64,000 bases of DNA from Entomortierella parvispora E1425 (taxonomy: Eukaryota; Fungi; Mortierellomycota): positions 1,116,001 to 1,180,000 of the forward strand of contig BQFW01000014.1 in the NCBI GenBank assembly GCA_020891255.1, in the 5' to 3' direction. Position numbers and translations under genes: made by a program. Position 1 is the stretch's first letter. Each line of letters begins with the position of its first letter. Shown here piece by piece: positions 6,222-15,610 of this stretch. The notes below the pieces were generated by a model. The model did not search any database, was not told where the DNA came from, and worked only from the letters and a program-made list of their open reading frames with translations.

Positions 6222-7868
6222 TTAGTAAAGGGTACGGGCATTGGCTTCCTCGGCGGCCAAATTCTCGGCCTTGAGGATTTCAATCTCGCTCAGCATACGC
6301 TGGCGTTCCTCCTCCTCGCGTTCGTACATGGCCACGTCCTCCATCTTGGCCTGGCGATTGCCCATCCAGCACGCCATCAGGGGCACAAACGCAAAGAGAA
6401 TACAGGCTGTCGTGATGCAGTTCCATTTGAATCCATGCTCCTTGTAGATATAGCCGGCCATGATCGGTCCGATCACCATGCCAAAACTGAATGCAATGTT
6501 GAAGATGGCGAACGCGCGTGCGTACGCGGCCTTGTCACCCGTGCGTCGGACCACTGCCGAGATTTCTCCCAAAATGGGGGCAATGAAGGAGCTGGTGCTG
6601 AGACCGATACCGATCAGGACCACGATGATCGCCCACAGAGGCTTGTTCTCGATACTGAGCAGGAGCATGAAGCAGCCACAGGCTGTCACCGCACAGGAAC
6701 AGAGAACCTTTGCACCATAGCGATCCGAGACCCACCCGGCCAGGGGCGAGATGATAGTGGGCATCGTGAAGGCAATAAAGACGAGACCGACCTGACCCTC
6801 CGTCATGCTGAAGCGGTCCTTGAGATAATAGGGCAATGTTGGCTCCAGAGTCGAGAGATCAAAGGCCTCCAAGGTCGTCACGGCTACGGCGGCAATCATT
6901 CGCTTGGCGGTGATCAATTGCCAGATCGACGTCTTGATTTCTTCTGTGTAAGGGTTGCCTGCAGCAATGGCACGTTCCCGGAGCTCGACCTCGTAGCGGC
7001 GGATCTCCAGGACCTCTTCCGCACGCTCCTCGATCAGAAGCAGGAAGCAAATCATGACAATACAGGCAAAGACAATGCTAAAGTAGAAGGGTGCACGGCT
7101 GCCAAACGCATCGTGCAAGAGACCGCCGATGGGAGGACCGCCAAGAAGACCCATGGTGTGACCGATCAAGGCCTTGCCCATCTGGACACCCATTTCGTTG
7201 GCATTGAAGGAGTCAGTCATCAGGGCAAGACCAAGGGTCCAGATAGCACCTCCGGAAACACCTTGGAAGAAACGGGCAAAAATCAGAAGCCAGTACACAC
7301 GGGCAAAGATGAAAATGACTGTGGCAGCCAAGAGGCCCGCGAGACCGATCATCATGGGAAAACGACGAGATGCCATCTTGTCCGAGAGGATACCAAAGAT
7401 GGGCGAAGCAGACATGATGCCGGCGGCGTAGACAGCGACGAGGATGCCGGTGTCGGTGGAGTCGCCGCCCATCTCTTGAATGATACCGGGGGCGATGGGG
7501 ATGACGATACCGTAGGCAGACATGTCTGTGAACAGGGCCAAGAGAATCGTCATTGTGATGAAATGCTTGGACGTGCGGATTCCATGAAGGAAGGGTTTCT
7601 TCTTCTTCAGAGCGAGGGCACAGCTATCACCATTGGAGGATGCCTTGCGAAGGGTTGTAGGGTATTGCTTCAGAGGGTCGCCTTTCTCGAGGGCAGAAGA
7701 ATCTTCCAAGGAGGGCTCCTTGGACTCTTGGGTAGTCTTCTGAAGTGGGGTGTTCAATCCATTTGCGGTGGCGGCGGAGGCGGTGGAGATTAAAGTGGCA
7801 CGATCTGCGTCGCAACGGCGAGTTGCGGAAAGATTTACGGTGGTGTCATTGAAGGCAACTGGATGCAT
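6222..7868 (-). CDS. MFS transporter, SLC18/vesicular amine transporter-like (548 aa, intronless)
   Basis: About 12 hydrophobic segments; MFS motif A in both halves (GILSDKMASRR, GWVSDRYGAK); DMSAYGIVIPI in TM1. Confidence 0.85.
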   Translation of the reverse strand: MHPVAFNDTTVNLSATRRCDADRATLISTASAATANGLNTPLQKTTQESKEPSLEDSSALEKGDPLKQYPTTLRKASSNGDSCALALKKKKPFLHGIRTSKHFITMTILLALFTDMSAYGIVIPIAPGIIQEMGGDSTDTGILVAVYAAGIMSASPIFGILSDKMASRRFPMMIGLAGLLAATVIFIFARVYWLLIFARFFQGVSGGAIWTLGLALMTDSFNANEMGVQMGKALIGHTMGLLGGPPIGGLLHDAFGSRAPFYFSIVFACIVMICFLLLIEERAEEVLEIRRYEVELRERAIAAGNPYTEEIKTSIWQLITAKRMIAAVAVTTLEAFDLSTLEPTLPYYLKDRFSMTEGQVGLVFIAFTMPTIISPLAGWVSDRYGAKVLCSCAVTACGCFMLLLSIENKPLWAIIVVLIGIGLSTSSFIAPILGEISAVVRRTGDKAAYARAFAIFNIAFSFGMVIGPIMAGYIYKEHGFKWNCITTACILFAFVPLMACWMGNRQAKMEDVAMYEREEEERQRMLSEIEILKAENLAAEEANARTLY

Positions 7869-8785
7869 TTGCTTTCAACGTAGATGTGGATGTGAGTGTG
7901 GAGAATTAAGGATGGAGGATGAAAGGATTGTCCATTACTAACTTGTCAACAGAAAGGGCAAGAGAGAGCGTAAGACAATAGAAAGTGAGTGAGAATAAAG
8001 GGTTTAGAAAAACGAAGGAAGCAACTTCACTTTATAGATGTCTGGCAGAGGACCAAAAGCCGTACCAAATTGGGCAAGCAATCGGGGAACAGAAAATGTT
8101 GCTGAGAATGTTCCACGTCGGGAGAGCGGATAGCGCGGTCTCACCTCTCTCCCTCTTCTGTACTTTGCCACAGTGGGTGTCTCCCTCAGCTAGCCCTCGT
8201 GCTTCTCATTGAGCAATTGCTCTCCTTGCAGATGTTAGCCATGACGACCCCAGTGAGGAAAACAAGCACGGCTGCAGTCTTGATTTAATAAGAAATGATG
8301 TGTGGACGCCGTCAACCCAGGTGAATCCACGTCTCACTGCTTCGCAAATGTGTTGCGATGGAACTGCAGAGATAGGGTACAATCTGACGGCAGTTTAAGT
8401 GAGAATTGGATCATCAGTGTTTGCGCATGGCCTCCCGTGTACCTTTCTATCCGGTCATCATTGCTCGGTAACGATAGTCGTTCGGGTGTAGTGAAAGGAG
8501 CAAGGATGGTCCGTCCGTTCAGGACCATTGCATGCCATCCTGATATGGTTGGGATCACCAGAAAATAGTCGTTGGATGGTTTCTGTTCTCGGACTTCACT
8601 TACAAACGCACCAAGGCTGCTCAGGTGACGTTGCAGCAACAAGTTTTTTTTTTATTTTCAATTGGGACGGCTGGTCCGTGCCAACTGACTGAAAATTCTC
8701 CGCTTTTGGGGTTTTGGACGGTAGTCTTTGGTGGCAAGGACACGTTTGTGGGCTGTGCTGGAGGTATTTAGAACCTGTCGATTCT

Positions 8786-9272
8786 CTAGTCAGTGGCCAC
8801 CTTAGCCGCCTTGCCTGTCTTCTTGATCGCCGCCAGGATTTCGTCCTATAAATTGTAGGTCGTGGTAGGTCATGAAAACATATTAGAGATCTTGCCATCC
8901 ATGAGAACTGGTGGATTCATTTCTCATAGTCGGCAATATACCTGATTCAAAGTCGATGATTCAACAACGACACGCTGCTTTTCTAGAGAAACGTCGAACT
9001 TGTCGACACCTACCATTTTATGGTGAGGGGGAGGTTGATAAGAAAGAATGCCAATTGCATTTTTGCACCTTCAAGGCAACTAGCCGTATTCAATTTACCT
9101 TCTAGCTTGTTGAGAGCTTTGGTCACCGCACCAGAACAGCCACCGCAAGACATGGTAACATCATACTTGTATTCCTAGAGACATGGAAAGTACAGAGTTG
9201 TTGTCAATGGCAAGGAATTGGAGAATTGGACAGACAAATGTCATATTGCTTGTGGTTTGTTCTTACAGTCAT
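8786..9272 (-). CDS. ATX1: Copper chaperone Atx1 (69 aa; exons 9272-9267, 9174-9099, 9009-8942, 8845-8786). Absent from the ORF track.
   Basis: Manual splicing gives MTEYKYDVTMSCGGCSGAVTKALNKLEGVDKFDVSLEKQRVVVESSTLNQDEILAAIKKTGKAAKVATD*, with the MxCxxC and KKTGK motifs. All introns are GT-AG. Confidence 0.93.
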
Positions 9273-9433
9273 TGTTTGAGGAAATGAGTTTGTGTGAATT
9301 TGGGGGTGGGGGGTTGTAGTGAAGCTGCCGATGGTTAGGTAGAGAAGAGCGAGTGAGCGTGGAGGGATGGTGAAGTAGGAGAGAGAACAAGGATAAAGAG
9401 GGATCCTTTTGTACAGAGGGTGCTATGGTGCAC

Positions 9434-9449
9434 GCACCTAGTCCCAACA
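9434..9449 (+). repeat. Left terminal inverted repeat candidate
   Basis: gcacctagtcccaaca; extends to 18/20 if 9430-9449 is paired with 15579-15598. Confidence 0.7.
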
Positions 9450-9977
9450 TAAGCGACACCCATGGACTTCATAAAACGATTGATGCCCTTTTCGCTTCTG
9501 GCCGGGTCCGCAACGTCGCTATGGAGAGAGATGGCTATATTTAAGGGTATTCCCCATGTCATATGCACGTGACTTTGATGGATGCGCGTTTCCGCCTTTT
9601 CGTGTTCTCCGTCTCATTCGTGGTCATTCATTCCCTCCCATTCTTTTCATCGTCCCATTCGCCTCTGCCCCTACTCCACGCACATACACATACACTCGTC
9701 TCCTCCACTTCACTATATCTCAATCCTCCCGAGCACCTACCCGTAATCGCAGCTTCAGTGCGTGCACAGTGTGTATCTCTTTATTGCAAAAAGCAGCATC
9801 TTACCTTCTCCTCTACTTTGTCCATGTCATGTTTGGTAGAAGTTCGAGTTGAAGTTGACTCGGTTGATATTGTCGTCCAGGCTTTGCGCTCTTTCAGGTA
9901 GATTGACATGACTTTCTGGCTGTTGCAGAACAGTTGATCCAGGTTCTAATAGCATTGTAGTCTTTGTCCTTTGTAGC

Positions 9978-12900
9978 ATGGGTGTAGCTAATGCCTTTGC
10001 GCCTCTGAAAGACTGCAAGGCGATCAAAGTCATCGACCCCAAGTCCCTAGATGGGTGTCATATCGATGGATCTGCAGTCTCCTATATCAGACTCAAAAAT
10101 ACAGAAGGCCGTCTTCTCCTCAAAGCGTTCAAAAAGCAAGCGAAGGAAGTTACCGCAGCAAGCATCACGGCTTCCCCGTTGCCCCTGGGAGAATGGGATA
10201 AGGAAAACAAATTGTGGCACTTCCCATCTCCTGAACGGCCTGATGGCTCATTTTCCCAAGACGTATCCGTCAGCGTCCCCCAAAGGATATCCGCTCTTCA
10301 CATCTCAAGCCCATCTTCGACCTCAAACAACAACCCCTCCACAACAATCCCGGTTGTTCCACGACAGCCGCTTATTCAGCCCCCGTCATATTTTGGGCCA
10401 GCCTCTCCTGTGTCAGCTTCATTCCCACCAGTATCGCAGCCACTTCCAGACAACGTCCGCCACGAACTCAATAGAGCGCGCGACGAGATGTTGCCTGTTC
10501 TTGCCAGGTCCATGGACAAAATGTTTGACAACAACTACAGCAAGTCGTCCGACTATATCCATTACGATGGGACACCTACAGCTGAAAAGGCTTTTGCCCG
10601 TGAACGTCGGTTCAAAGCCAGCCTACCCGCATCTGTCAAAATGTCTGACATGCTCGCTTCGACCGAAAGACGGCTTTTACAGTTGGAATCGAAAACAAAT
10701 CTGTCCAACAGTCAGCTTCATCGGCTCAGGAAGTATCTTGGGTGCGTCGTGTTTCCACACTGGCTCAAGTGCCGTAGTGTTGACCCCCGAACAACCAAGA
10801 ATGTTGCCCGTGAACTCCATGACTCTCATGGATGGCGTTCGCACGTCTGCAACGGCCAGTTCGACATTTGCGCTGGAAAATTGGCCCGCGATGACCCAAA
10901 CCTCACGGTGGTGACCACTGACAGTGACCTCATGTTCATGGGGATTAAGGAGTTCGTTCGTTTCCAACCTAGAGGCACCCGGTTCTATTCCTACCCTGTC
11001 GAGGAAATGATTACATTTTGTGGACTTGAATCAAAAGAGCAGTGGGTCGCAGGCGCAGTCGTAAGTCTTAATGACTATGACCCAAGCGTCGGCCGGACGT
11101 CGTTCAATAGCGCCATCAAGGCAATGAAGGCCATCCGAGAGGATTTGCTTCGCGAGGACATTAATCCTACTGTTGAGGCGCATGTAGCTAAATTCTGCTC
11201 GAAGAAAAAGGATCATGTTGAGAATGTCCAGCAGTCCATCAGCAGCTTTGTGAATCTGCAAGAGACGTTTCTTCAACAAAACCAACAGGTCAACGACGTT
11301 CTCGACGACTCGATCCGCAGGATAGTTTTTCGTTTGGGAGTTTTGACGAGCCGGTAAGGGTGAAATTTCACGGAAGACGTTATCCTGTTGTTATAACTAC
11401 CAACCAATGTATTGATCATGACTTGTGCATTGCCACTTTACTGCCATCTTAGGTGTCGTCAGTCGCGCAGGCCCCAATCAGATGAAGGGTCGGCCATGCA
11501 CATGTTTAGCTTTTCGTCAGCCGCGTTGATTTCTCCTCAGCTCGATGCGGTAACGGATAATATCGTCAGCGTGCTGGCACTTTGTCCGCCAGAGCCCGAT
11601 GCTGGCTCAACCGTCGAACTGTTAACACCTCGTCCAGCCGCTACAAGCAGTGATCTCGATCCTGAAGTAAAGCTGAGAAAGAAGCTCCGTCGAGGGTAAG
11701 CCCAATGATTCTGCTGCTCGATGTTTGCACTGAAATACGACAGGCATTTGACCTTTTTTTTTACTCCTATCTTCTTCATGTCTTTATCTTTCTTTAAAAC
11801 ACAGCTATTGTCGGTACTCCTCTGGCCATAAATACTGCCCCAAGGCATTCTCTTCGGTCTACATAAATCCAAGCAAGAACACTGAGCCCATCGGCTGTAG
11901 GAACATGACCATTGGCCGACCTTCTTCCAGTTCTCAAATTCAAGATCATAGTGAAGAGGATGAAGGAGAGGAGGGCGAAGACAGTTTTCCAGCCGATGAG
12001 GATGTTCAGAGCGTCGAGTCTGTCCCTCAGGACAAAAAGTCCAAGGCTGCCAAGGAGAAAAAGTCCAAGGCCGAACAGAAGAAGATGAAGGCCGAGGAGA
12101 AAAAAGCAAGGGTTGCCGAAGAGAAAAAGGCGAAGGTCGAGGAGAAAAAGGCGAAGGCTGCCGAGGAGAAGAAAGCGAGGGCCGAGGAGAAAAAAAAATC
12201 TAGAAAGCGACCGAGCACGACGACCTACGCCCCATCCAAGAGGAGGTCCCGAGACGAGGAAATGAAGGGAAAAGGAGCTGCCGAGCAAAATGCGGATGTA
12301 AAGTCTCGGAAGAGAAATACCACCAATATCATTGGCGACATTGTCGGTGGCCATTTTCCACTAGTCGCGATGAGACCTGGCCGACTCGAGTCATGCCTCT
12401 CTCACAGTGTAAAAAACTCGTTTCCGTCGCTCAGCGAAGACGACCGCACAACATTGGTAAAGTACATGGTCACTGTCATAAGTACCATGGCCAAGGTCCA
12501 TTCCGATCTCCTACGTGAGGGTCTCCTGGCGACGGAGCTCTATATCGCGACTGTATTCAAGGAGTACCCGGCAATTGATGGCGACCAAGCGCTGAGCGAT
12601 GCAGAAGAGAGGAGGAGCCGGTTCAATAATCTCCTAAGCCCAGCGTATTGTGGCCCATTTTTTCAGCGACTTCTCCGTCGAATGATCTACTGGGGCTCTG
12701 ATGACTCTGGACTCGGCAAGACTATTTCAAAGACAACAACAGATGCTGATGATCTTTTCAAGAAGTACAAGAAGCTCACCGAAGCTCGAAGTGCAAAGCC
12801 GTTCTTACCTAATGACGGAGACATTTGTGACAAAGCATTCATCGAGCAATGTGCAAGAGGTCTCTCTGACATGATCGGGAGCCATGTATTCAAATTTACT

Positions 12901-15484
12901 TTGGAACTAAAGAAGAGGGTAAGTCCTTGCAACAAAAGCTATCCTATTCTTTGCGAGCTTCACCATGACTCTAACCACACCGAATTTTTAACTGCGCATT
13001 GTAATAGGTCATTCTCAACAACCCTACCTGGGCTTCCTCTGTCTGTGGAAAGGAACTGTTGAACTCGATCAACGACGACGGCAAGTCTGACAAACACGAT
13101 CGGCTTAGCATGCACTTGATTATGAACATGATGCTTCCTGCAGCAGCTCAGATCAAAACTCTGCCTGAAGTCGGGTTCGGCGACGGATTCTTCACGGTGA
13201 CTGAGCGTCAACTTATTAAATGTCTTCTGAAAGACTGCAGGTTGACCAACAATCGCAAAAAAGGCACAAGTGAGAAGGACCGACAAGCCCAGATTCTCAA
13301 CAGTATTTTTGGAGCAAAGACGTCAGCCGAAGCCAACACGCAGGACGAGGTCGGACGACTTTCCTTCTACCTTTTCCTCAACGGTCAGAATACCAGCTAT
13401 CGCCGTGGGGCAAACGTGCTCTGGGCCAACGATGACTTGAATGCCTCGTCCTCGTCGTCCTCGTCATCTCTGCCATCGAGCAGTACAAAATGTGCTCTGC
13501 AATCGCTACCCCTCCATTCGAGGATGCTCCTCGAGCAAAACGTTGTCGAACAGATTGAGGAAGTCTCGGCGAGACTGGATGATATGCCCGCTAGTGACTC
13601 TAGTTATCAAGCCACCAAGGATGAGCTCAGATCCATTGTACGTGACGGACTCCAGAGCCCTGAACTTTATCAAAGGCAGATCGACGATGCCAGCCCAGGG
13701 TCCAAGCGACAAAAATACATTCTGAGTGGCGATTTCTCAACGAATGGTTACGATCTGCGTGTCATGGCCTACAAACTGACCGAGAAAAAACGAGCTGCAA
13801 AGACAACAGCGTCGAATGTCGCGGCGGGGTCGTTCACTTCAAGTTCCGTCGGTCCGTCTCGGTTGGCTGTGGATGATCCATCCAGTACTGGGCCCATTCT
13901 CTCTACTTCCATCGAGATGGAATGGGAATCAAATCTCCCTCCAAGCCCCGAGAAGCAGACATCGAGTGAGCCACTGCCAGCACCTGCACTAGTATCAATA
14001 GTGGCGTCGGGTGCAGCTTTGCCTTGGTCAACTGCACCAGTTTTGAATGGATGCCCATACATCTATGATGAATTCAACACACAGGATACAATCGACAAGC
14101 TGCACGAAGGCACTGTAGGCCCGCAAATTGGCATCCGAGCTCTTTGTTTGGACCCAGGAGTCGCCTGCACAGCCACAGGCACATTGGTGCACTCCAACTT
14201 TGAACATGATGCCATCAACTTGGTCATTCCTCGCGGCCCCAGAGACACAATCAACAGACGGTACCGCAAGCATCAAAGTAATCTCAAGTCTGCAAAAGGG
14301 ATCCCAGACGTCGAGGCGAGGCTAATGTCGATGAAGCCGGTCCAGGTCGGGATGATTGCCCAGGGAGATCGGGACCAAATCATGGAGGATGTCCAAGAAA
14401 AAAACGAAGCACAGACGGGCCTAGCCATGGAAGACGTACAAACGAGCTCCGGCGATGAGTCATCGCAAAGAGAGACGGGCATGATGACCTTGACCGCAGC
14501 CATGATCCAGGCTGCCCAAGAGTTCGAATCAGCGGTGAAGACTCACATCGTGAGCCAAGCAAAAGAGTCGCCAATCCTTCGAAGTTATTACGGCAGTGTG
14601 GAATTCAAGAAAGACAGGTACCACTACCGCGAAGCTATTCGTCATGATCTCGACTCAGCCACCACTGCAGTTCTCAAGATGCGGCATTTTGTTCCCGATC
14701 GGCAGCCGACGGCGGATGATCTCCGGAGGATCATCAACACTGTGTTGGAGGACCCCGGGAAGGCCAAGAAGGATGTCGAGGCTCTACCAGGGGTCAAAAG
14801 CTACGACTGGATATCCTACCAGAATGCTATGAAAGACTCTGGCCAGCTCTCGGGTGATGAACTCCATGCTTTCTTGTCGTCGGACCCTGTCGTCAAAAGC
14901 CTGGAAAAGATGGCTAGATCATTGTTCAAAAGGGGCTATCTGAGTTTGAATCGTCTCTCGGACCACGATCGTAACGAGTTTCTAGCCTCGCCCTTCATTA
15001 TTGGTGTTGGAGATGGGGATTATCGACGGTGGAAGGGTCAGAGTCATGGATGTGGAAAATTCACAGAGAACTTGATCAGACAGGCAAGTGCTGGCAATCT
15101 ATGAGTGCGAGTGTGTGGGTAGAGTGTTGGTGAAGACAAGTTTCTAATATCTGGAATTTTATTTGGATGAAATAGAGGCGAGATCTGGCCAAGGACCTTG
15201 CCAGGAACAAGGAAAAGAGGCCCACTGTCATCAAACTTGTCAAGATGCCCGAGTTTCGGTCTTCGGTGTTTTGTTGCTCGTGCCACTTTCGCGTGAAAGA
15301 GGAGGGCCGATCGGTCATCTGTGACGAGTGCCACAAGAGCCGCGACCGGGACCACAATTCCGCCACGAATCTGTCGCATGCGGCCATACACTTTCTTCGT
15401 AAACGAGAGTGGCCTGCTCCTCTTGATTTTACAAAGGCGAAGCTTGCGGATCTCGCCGACCACGCCAACAACAACGATGCTTGA
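9978..15484 (+). CDS. ~1705-aa fusion protein: N-terminal FEN1/XPG-like PIN nuclease, Lys/Glu-rich linker, C-terminal Fanzor/TnpB-like RuvC and Zn finger. Exons 9978-11353, 11453-11695, 11805-12918, 13008-15083, 15176-15484.
   Basis: The exons join in frame (5118 nt). PIN motifs: MGV..., HIDGS, HYDGTP..K...RR, GQFD, TTDSDL, NDY. RuvC motifs: LCLDPG, IIGVGDG, MPEFRSSVFCCSC...CDEC...RDRDHNSATN. Confidence 0.85.
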
Positions 15485-15610
15485 AGAATGACTTCAAGCC
15501 ATATTTTTACGGTACGTCGCGCGTCGTATCATGTGATCTGTTAATTTGTTGACGGTTCGTTTTCACTGACTCTTGGACTGTTGGGAATAGGTGCCTGCCA
15601 CTGTACGTGA
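15479..15610 (+). ncRNA. Candidate Fanzor omegaRNA (scaffold up to the right end, guide in the flank)
   Basis: Sits between the Fanzor stop codon and the right inverted repeat. Perfect 8-bp hairpin GCTTGAAG-aatga-CTTCAAGC at 15479-15499. Boundaries are inferred, not observed. Confidence 0.45.
15579..15594 (-). repeat. Right terminal inverted repeat candidate
   Basis: tgttgggaataggtgc, 95 nt after the stop codon of the Fanzor-like gene. Confidence 0.7.

Follow-up and report, generated by a model that had tools for sequence, protein, structure and literature searches.

The 64,000-nucleotide (nt) window analyzed here, taken from contig BQFW01000014.1 of Entomortierella parvispora E1425 (positions 1,116,001 to 1,180,000), contains at 9978-15484 of its + strand one five-exon gene, transcribed and spliced, that encodes a protein of 1,705 aa. 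The N-terminal part of this protein is, by fold and motifs, a member of the FEN1 superfamily of 5' nucleases (here also called the PIN domain), and its C-terminal part has the sequence features of a Fanzor1-type, TnpB-like core. A 6.18-kb element carries this gene and no other, and the best-supported view is that the gene serves a Tc1/mariner-like transposon as a functional single-chain FEN1-like/Fanzor protein. We propose that the Fanzor core would cut DNA under RNA guidance and that the tethered 5' nuclease would process the resulting break. Taken together, the single fused gene and this predicted cut-and-resect mechanism form our best explanation of the data, to which we give a probability of about 0.5.

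In genomic DNA the gene appears as four large open reading frames (ORFs) of 459, 385, 681, and 79 codons, lying in differing frames, and one small exon. We enumerated the frame-preserving GT/GC..AG combinations as candidate introns and then compared them with contigs from sequencing runs. The contigs of run X1, which are fragmentary and at least 99% alike to the exons, omit exactly four stretches, all with GT/GC..AG borders (Table 1). A 971-nt contig bridges 78 nt of exon 1, the whole of exon 2, and exon 3, while separate contigs bridge exons 3-4 and exons 4-5, the latter through the stop codon. Another possible position of intron 3, with an acceptor at 13052 (12919-13052), was ruled out by these contigs, which show 12919-13007. 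The five exons join into one open coding sequence of 5,118 nt. Both its length and its residue numbering are those of the sequence-only reading, a model's note made earlier from the letters of the window, which had proposed that four + strand ORF fragments and a small exon splice together and that transcripts across the four junctions would be the check. The motif positions given there were also found to be correct (FSTNGYDLRV at 1154, D1293, IIGVGDG at 1575, E1629, the zinc finger at 1636-1655, and D1662). A further X1 contig omits a fifth intron (15512-15590) and runs past the end of the element into the locus's own flank, which is not expected of a processed DNA copy. This and the uneven depth indicate that X1 is effectively a transcript assembly.

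The conservation of the gene structure bears on whether one gene is present or two. All four intron positions are kept in relatives that are 44-46% identical, and so is the GC donor of intron 4, whose unusual GCAAG sequence is retained in locus L003. In the relatives, automatic annotation makes at least two genes of the locus, and the PIN ORF terminates at a stop codon in genomic DNA, as would be expected of a stand-alone PIN nuclease (9978-11357) adjoining a Fanzor that starts at ATG 11905. However, this apparent stop is a TAA within the GTAAG donor of intron 1, as it is in L003 and L002, and it is spliced out; exons 1, 2, and 3 are joined in one contig; and the peptide 5' of ATG 11905 is conserved, while L003 and L002 lack a Met at that position. 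With exon 1 as the query, an exhaustive HMMER search returned 70 relatives. Among them are seven proteins of 1,104-1,375 aa, about 25% identical, in which segments like exons 1, 3, and 4 follow each other in order in six; in the seventh, P0058, no segment like exon 3 was detected. In L005 and L006 the PIN domain, the middle region, and RuvC-I/II lie within single uninterrupted ORFs of 1,168-1,196 codons, and a conserved intron precedes the last exon in each of the loci examined (L003-L007). We therefore regard two adjoining genes as extremely improbable and hold it as nearly certain that the PIN and Fanzor parts are one fused, functional protein, as the sequence-only reading had it.

The database proteins of the family (P0001-P0010 and P0031-P0064) all stop at the last intron or read into it, just after 'NLIRQ/LKKK'. 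This conserved intron, in part of GC-AG type, has thus cut the automatic gene models short and hidden the TnpB-like zinc ribbon. Since annotation splits or truncates the genes, partly through this intron, the family is invisible as a fusion in current protein databases.

The nature of the N-terminal domain was established through the family as well as through its predicted structure. The family consensus shows the FEN1/XPG motif series (MGV...D, hFDG-PT-QK-A-R, GEAD, DSD, and NDY), and a profile of 33 family sequences matched FEN1, XPG/Rad2, EXO1, and GEN1 in the PDB at E-values between 1e-9 and 1e-4, which rank before those of any other family. Pfam XPG_I is matched by 10 of 39 relatives at E <= 0.01 (best 6.6e-5); the two relatives whose bit scores are listed have 15.9 and 16.2, under the gathering cut-off of 24.9. 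The window protein itself has no Pfam XPG match, and the only Pfam match of its exon 1 is XRN_N, below threshold. We searched with an AlphaFold2 model of exon 1 whose mean predicted local distance difference test score (pLDDT) is 84.5. The top 50 Foldseek matches in the PDB were all FEN1, EXO1, or Rad2 (E from 8e-8, template modelling score by target up to 0.52, for EXO1), and the top 30 in AFDB Swiss-Prot were all FEN1 (best E 4.7e-9); XRN2 occurs among the fold matches. Both the proposed FEN1/XPG identity of this domain and the predicted outcome of the fold search were thus borne out. A comparison of the PIN profile with that of the last exon, made as a negative control, gave no relation.

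The active site has one departure from the FEN1 pattern. Six of the seven carboxylates of human FEN1 (hFEN1) are present in the window protein, and these six and the Lys/Arg pair are nearly invariant in the 33 sequences. K204 and R211 lie at +7 and +14 from D197, the spacing of D86, K93, and R100 in hFEN1 (for the numbering and for the role of K93 and R100, see PMC6009646), and they align with the Lys and Arg of M. jannaschii FEN-1. The idea of a complete PIN active site did not hold, for Gln294 takes the place of hFEN1 E158 in the window and in its six closest relatives, which make up the whole subclade of seven. The wider family retains the Glu (GEAD) and with it the complete FEN1 carboxylate set. 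The domain also encloses a disordered insert of 66 residues (91-156). It is, by sequence motifs and modelled fold, a FEN1-superfamily member with one metal ligand changed.

At the C-terminus, exon 5 matches Pfam PF07282 (Cas12f1-like TNB; 27.1 bits, cut-off 26.3, E 4.7e-6) and three NCBIfam TnpB models (6.8e-6 to 1.9e-4, with IS200_TnpB at 6.8e-6). A profile of exon 5 from seven loci found only TnpB, Fanzor, and Cas12 chains in the PDB (ISDra2 TnpB at 2.5e-6, mimivirus Fanzor2 at 2.8e-6). The sequence-only reading had named MPEFRSS as RuvC-II. Its glutamate, E1629, is indeed there, but as the alternative Glu of Fanzors: the canonical RuvC-II position is IIGVGDG, where Gly replaces Glu, and E1629 lies 48-50 residues after it. 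Fanzors are distinguished by a canonical RuvC-II Glu changed to Gly or Pro and an alternative Glu about 45 residues downstream, and this is the arrangement found here. E1629 aligns to E467 of mimivirus Fanzor2 (ApmFz2, 9b0l), which is the catalytic alternative Glu of a group that carries Gly or Pro at the canonical site (Jiang et al. 2023, PMC10530073). The Gly at RuvC-II and the downstream Glu also fit the conserved G and E of Fanzor1 described by Bao & Jurka 2013 (PMC3627910). The elements of their Fanzor1 motif, D-X(125,275)-[TS][TS]-X-X-C4 zinc finger-X(5,50)-RD, occur here in order (D1293, S1631-S1632, C1636/1639/1652/1655, and R1661-D1662), with a first spacer of 338 residues that exceeds the published range. 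The zinc ribbon, RuvC-III, and the rearranged Glu support a Fanzor1-type, TnpB-like core.

The claim of a Fanzor/TnpB C-terminus stands for these elements, while the fold of RuvC-I/II is moderately supported. RuvC-I (I/L-D-P-G) is conserved in both clades of the family, and a language-model atlas placed both the spliced parvispora core and the window segment near TnpB/Fanzor/RuvC clusters, with scores of 0.93-0.95. The AlphaFold2 model of exon 4, outside of which lies RuvC-III (in exon 5), has the b1-b2-b3-a1...b4-a order that is expected of a RuvC fold. The fold search that had been suggested for the Fanzor part gave a mixed answer: against 350,542 chains, the Fanzor SpuFz took the top four Foldseek ranks, at E-values of 0.1-0.4. 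VIA-align gave Z-scores of 6.8-7.3 to Cas12/Fanzor RuvC domains (SpuFz at Z 6.8, 3.5 A over 153-161 residues). A local hhalign comparison of the family cores with E. coli InsQ reached 40% probability only, restricted to the zinc ribbon and RuvC-III, and a homology search with E. coli InsQ returned near-identical E. coli variants only.

Between the two nucleases, the Lys/Glu-rich linker of exon 3 is disordered and carries a stretch like a nuclear localization signal (NLS), and the helical region that follows it is conserved in 14 relatives. No family match was found for this middle region, for which the language-model atlas gave weak coiled-coil look-alikes only. Single-sequence searches of exons 1, 3, and 4 against Pfam, the PDB, and NCBIfam gave nothing useful.

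Every module of the protein is under purifying selection. Compared with L008 (72-79% aa identity, dS 0.5-0.8), the ratio of nonsynonymous to synonymous substitution rates (dN/dS) is 0.25-0.33 in the PIN core, 0.32 in the middle region, 0.23 in the WED/REC-like region, 0.15 in RuvC, and 0.17 in the last exon. The named relatives all belong to Mortierellaceae (Entomortierella, Mortierella, Linnemannia, Benniella, Haplosporangium, and Gryganskiella), and 13 loci come from metagenomes of the Joint Genome Institute (JGI). No relative was found in IMG/VR or among prokaryotic genome contigs. The search for the same domain order in relatives, proposed in the earlier note, was successful: the fusion architecture is conserved across Mortierellaceae, including clades that are only about 25% identical and have it in uninterrupted ORFs.

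Table 1. Features of the PIN-Fanzor gene and of its element (window coordinates unless a locus is named)
Feature	Nucleotides	Strand	Residues	Remarks
Whole element	9424-15605	+		6,182 bp including TA at each end (9424-9425, 15604-15605)
Left terminal inverted repeat core GCACCTAGTCCCAACA	9434-9449	+		Pattern match
Right terminal inverted repeat core GCACCTATTCCCAACA	15579-15594	-		Pattern match
Exon 1	9978-11353	+	1-459	FEN1/XPG-family (PIN-like) 5' nuclease domain
Active-site residue			D30	hFEN1 D34
Active-site residue			D197	hFEN1 D86
Arch residue			K204	hFEN1 K93
Arch residue			R211	hFEN1 R100
Changed metal ligand			Q294	hFEN1 E158
Active-site residue			D296	hFEN1 E160
Active-site residue			D315	hFEN1 D179
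Active-site residue			D317	hFEN1 D181
Active-site residue			D366	hFEN1 D233
Intron 1	11354-11452	+		99 nt, GTAAGG..TTAG; absent from the X1 contig bridging exons 1-2-3; donor position kept in L003 and L002
Exon 2	11453-11695	+		81 codons, linker; coding weakly conserved in L003 and L002
Intron 2	11696-11804	+		109 nt, GTAAGC..ACAG; omitted in X1 contig; position conserved
Exon 3	11805-12918	+		Acidic, then Lys/Glu-rich linker, then conserved helical region of unknown fold
NLS-like KKKSRKRP	12190-12213	+	669-676	Within Lys/Glu-rich linker of exon 3
Intron 3	12919-13007	+		89 nt, GTAAGT..ATAG; omitted in X1 contig; position conserved
Exon 4	13008-15083	+		WED/REC-like region, RuvC-I, long helical insert, canonical RuvC-II position
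FSTNGYDLRV		+	1154	WED-like, exon 4
RuvC-I LCLDPG	14151-14153	+	D1293	Exon 4; D-P-G invariant in family alignment
Canonical RuvC-II position IIGVGDG	14997-15017	+	1575-1581	Gly replaces Glu; G-D-G invariant
Intron 4	15084-15175	+		92 nt, GCAAGT..ATAG (GC-AG); omitted in X1 contig; position conserved family-wide
Exon 5	15176-15484	+		Alternative Glu, zinc ribbon, RuvC-III; stop TGA 15482-15484
Alternative catalytic Glu (MPEFRSS)	15251-15253	+	E1629	Exon 5; invariant in seven loci
Zinc ribbon CCSC/CDEC	15272-15331	+	C1636/C1639...C1652/C1655	Exon 5
RuvC-III (RDRDHN)	15350-15352	+	D1662	Exon 5
Hairpin over stop codon	15479-15499	+		8-bp stem, then CATATTTTTACGG
Intron in 3' untranslated region	15512-15590	+		79 nt, GTACGT..AATAG; ends 15 nt before right end; absent from X1 contig running through 15605
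Extra ORFs of the long element	L003 182-3066; L002 5249-7180			Weak HTH_33, DDE_3, and IS630 signals

The limits of the element were set by its termini and by comparison of copies. The left end reads TA followed by TGGTGCAC and the right end GCCACTG followed by TA. The pattern GCACCTANTCCCAACA, which underlies the terminal inverted repeats (TIRs), occurs only twice in the 64 kb, inverted and at the two ends of the element, while none of 100 shuffles gave two matches. Between the window and another E. parvispora locus, L001, the DNA identity of 91-96% is confined to about 9424-15605, and the neighbour genes are unrelated; L003, L012, L013, L014, and L015 have the same terminal motifs beside unrelated flanks. 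Within the L003 lineage, 46% identical to the window and made up of copies about 99% alike, five contigs share the right end and then enter five different flanks, and two of them also differ on the left, which amounts to at least five insertion sites. The copies all read flank-TA-TGGTGCAC...CACTG-TA-flank, with TA at both ends of every copy, a CAGTG-type right terminus, and imperfect TIRs. These terminal motifs of the window clade are not shared by the distant clade. An inverted repeat in L003 (2506/8725) was dropped as a chance occurrence since it lies inside an ORF. In the window, the element adjoins an HMA-domain exon on one side and a nucleoside hydrolase gene on the other.

Run X1 includes both the window copy and the L001 copy, each with its own flank, and L001 is hence a paralogous copy. 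It is decayed (6222-11646), with deletions matching window 10596-10667 and 12778-13467, a Gly for the RuvC-I Asp (LCLGPG), and, in its 3' region, a 17-nt deletion, in addition to a 9-nt insertion; its right end with the flank is the most abundant piece in X1, at a depth of 151. At window position 15453, X1 transcripts that otherwise match carry the same kind of 9-nt insertion, CGCCGACCA, as in L001. It is a tandem repeat adding Ala-Asp-His, and the window could lack it through a collapse in the assembly, or because the transcripts come from another allele or from a third copy. Two other runs with the same species label, X6 and X8, have only gene fragments, 85-95% alike to window 10100-15500, at a depth of 60-190, and nothing of the flank. 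They hold related multi-copy elements but apparently come from a different genome.

How such an element moves is suggested by its longer relatives. In the L003 lineage it spans 8.75 kb and has three extra ORFs upstream of the PIN-Fanzor gene, 56-80% conserved in M. claussenii. Their matches in the long relatives are below threshold and concordant (HTH_33 0.0028, DDE_3 0.011, and IS630 0.0088), and the three ORFs are possibly the exons of a very divergent Tc1/mariner-type transposase. One could suppose instead that mobility depends on the PIN nuclease, which would cut or resolve the ends in place of a transposase while the Fanzor provides targeting, as the window's element encodes nothing else. 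We find this very unlikely: the longer versions in two lineages hold the three conserved ORFs inside the same termini, the TA flanks and CAGTG-type ends suit Tc1/mariner chemistry, and non-autonomous Mariner elements with only Fanzor1, with Mariner TIRs and TA duplications, are already documented (PMC3627910).

Conserved non-coding sequence follows the stop codon, before the right end of the element. The stem of the hairpin over the stop codon is kept by compensatory changes in L003 (8562-8585) and by a G-U pair in L001, and a T-rich conserved block, GCCAT(A)TTTTTACGG, follows directly after it. In L003 the acceptor of the intron in the 3' untranslated region (UTR) lies at the same distance from the element end, and X1 contigs show transcription continuing past the right end into the flank. 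The contig that lacks this intron has a depth of 69, compared with 16-25 over the ORF, and enters the downstream IU_nuc_hydro gene (15974 onward), whose mRNA may start inside the element or read through from it. In the distant clade, the stop is directly followed by a different conserved non-coding block (L004 8792-8860, L006 5627-5690; ...GCAATACTAGAT..CCCC), unrelated to that of the window clade. This block is a candidate guide-RNA scaffold of the distant clade.

In the mechanism that we propose, the RuvC core would be loaded with RNA transcribed across the right end of the element, as in other Fanzors and TnpBs. Thus guided, it would cut DNA that matches the flank, i.e., the site emptied by excision, and the tethered FEN1/EXO1-like domain would remove a 5' flap or resect the 5' strand at the break. 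Repair would thereby be channelled to homologous recombination from a copy that bears the element, which would be retained or spread. By analogy with characterized Fanzors and TnpBs, RNA-guided DNA cutting by the RuvC core is probable. The action of the PIN domain on the break is its predicted role and the one that we prefer, at somewhat less than even odds.

PIN-like and XRN-type nucleases process RNA, and the PIN domain might accordingly trim or mature the guide RNA from a long mRNA or 3' UTR transcript across the right end. The right-end RNA belongs to a long spliced transcript of RNA polymerase II type that would need processing, the sole Pfam match of exon 1, below threshold, is XRN_N and XRN2 is among its fold matches, and the conserved change from Glu to Gln could mean an altered substrate. 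On the other hand, both the sequence and the fold comparisons rank enzymes that act on DNA (FEN1, EXO1, and Rad2) above XRN or RNA-directed PIN proteins, the FEN1 arch residues K93 and R100 are conserved, and the wider family retains the full carboxylate set, so that we rate a role in RNA processing as quite unlikely. It is a little less unlikely, though still improbable, that the domain is catalytically attenuated and mainly binds particular DNA structures, such as flaps or R-loop junctions, or recruits proteins, or that the whole protein is a selfish passenger without a nuclease role beyond that of ordinary Fanzors. Such a loss would agree with Gln294 in place of a metal-binding Glu throughout the subclade and with the missing Pfam XPG match, but less well with the near invariance of the six carboxylates and the Lys/Arg pair, the dN/dS of the PIN core, and the intact GEAD of the distant clade.

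Several observations speak against the proposal of a fused protein that cuts and resects DNA in the service of a transposon. As regards the gene, all junctions are bridged, yet no single X1 contig covers all five exons, and X1, the source of the splice evidence, carries the label 'DNA?', which is itself a guess. The Gln at the E158 equivalent may mean that PIN catalysis is altered or weakened. The model of exon 4 has a low pLDDT of 60, and none of its matches reaches the confidence line of the tool concerned (E >= 0.1, Z < 8); RuvC-I/II are unrecognized by sequence profiles, as neither the exon 4 profile nor a four-sequence profile of the complete core found TnpB or Fanzor in the PDB. There is no DD(E/D) transposase in the window's element or in the whole 64-kb window. 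No empty site was seen, the same-label runs holding no flank, so the TA is only a putative duplication. Finally, the 3' region folds no better than shuffled sequences (z 0.01), has no Rfam match, and is partly spliced out of at least some transcripts.

The protein can be compared with several known systems. Like Fanzor1 proteins (SpuFz1, PDB 8gkh; PpFz of Parasitella parasitica), which are also the top-ranked fold matches of its RuvC part, it is eukaryotic, intron-containing, and transposon-borne, with the C-terminal D...[ST][ST]xx-C4 zinc ribbon...RD, the Gly at RuvC-II with a downstream Glu, and an NLS-like basic stretch. It differs from them in size (about 1,705 aa, where the chains of solved structure have roughly 600-750), in having, ahead of the core, a complete FEN1-family domain and some 700 residues more, and in the 338-residue spacing from the RuvC-I Asp to [ST][ST], compared with 125-275 in Bao & Jurka. 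The window family is detectable by sequence in the Fanzors of the PDB only through the last exon. TnpB (ISDra2 TnpB, E. coli InsQ) is likewise an accessory nuclease of mobile elements, and its zinc ribbon and RuvC-III align (DRDHN here, DRDEN in TnpB). However, TnpB has the canonical RuvC-II Glu and a Tyr where the window family has the alternative Glu, lacks a 5' nuclease domain and introns, and resides in IS200/IS605 rather than in TA-flanked TIR elements. With FEN1, EXO1, and XPG (Rad2) the N-terminal domain shares the fold, the motif series, and the arch Lys/Arg at +7/+14 from the second Asp. Unlike them, the window subclade has Gln for hFEN1 E158, the 66-residue disordered insert, and no Pfam XPG match of its own, and its domain is fused to a putatively RNA-guided nuclease instead of PCNA-binding or repair-factor tails. 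Among mobile elements, the Mariner elements PUl-4 and PGv-1 (PMC3627910) also have Fanzor1 cargo within TA-flanked TIRs, some of them without a transposase. PGv-1, with a second nuclease, GIY-YIG, beside the Fanzor in the same element, is the nearest precedent (PMC3627910). There the GIY-YIG nuclease is a separate protein, whereas here the FEN1-family domain is covalently fused to the Fanzor and conserved as such.

We found no description of a FEN1-like/Fanzor fusion in the searchable literature, which includes the main Fanzor surveys and leaves subscription journals outside, and the novelty that the sequence-only reading could not verify is probable. Fanzors are, to our knowledge, the only eukaryotic RNA-guided DNA nucleases, and they are under development as compact genome editors. 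In the laboratory, Cas9 or Cas12 has been fused to 5'-3' or 3'-5' exonucleases, giving programmable nucleases with a tethered exonuclease that biases repair; the PIN-Fanzor, in contrast with these engineered constructs, is a natural gene maintained by selection. If the mechanism is true, it would offer a template from nature for editors that steer repair to resection-dependent outcomes (homology-directed repair, defined deletions), such as are now made by artificial exonuclease-Cas fusion. The fullest version of our proposal, a natural two-nuclease, RNA-guided, cut-and-resect homing machine that uses RNA from a spliced read-through transcript and constitutes a previously undescribed class of eukaryotic OMEGA effector, actively proliferating in and specific to Mortierellaceae, is one that we consider doubtful. 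What the family shows is the covalent addition of a structure-specific 5' nuclease to a Fanzor, with both parts kept under selection and spread via recently active transposons. The fusion suggests that RNA-guided cutting and the processing of ends are mechanistically linked and, if this is true, the idea of homing by break-induced recombination would become testable in a eukaryote.

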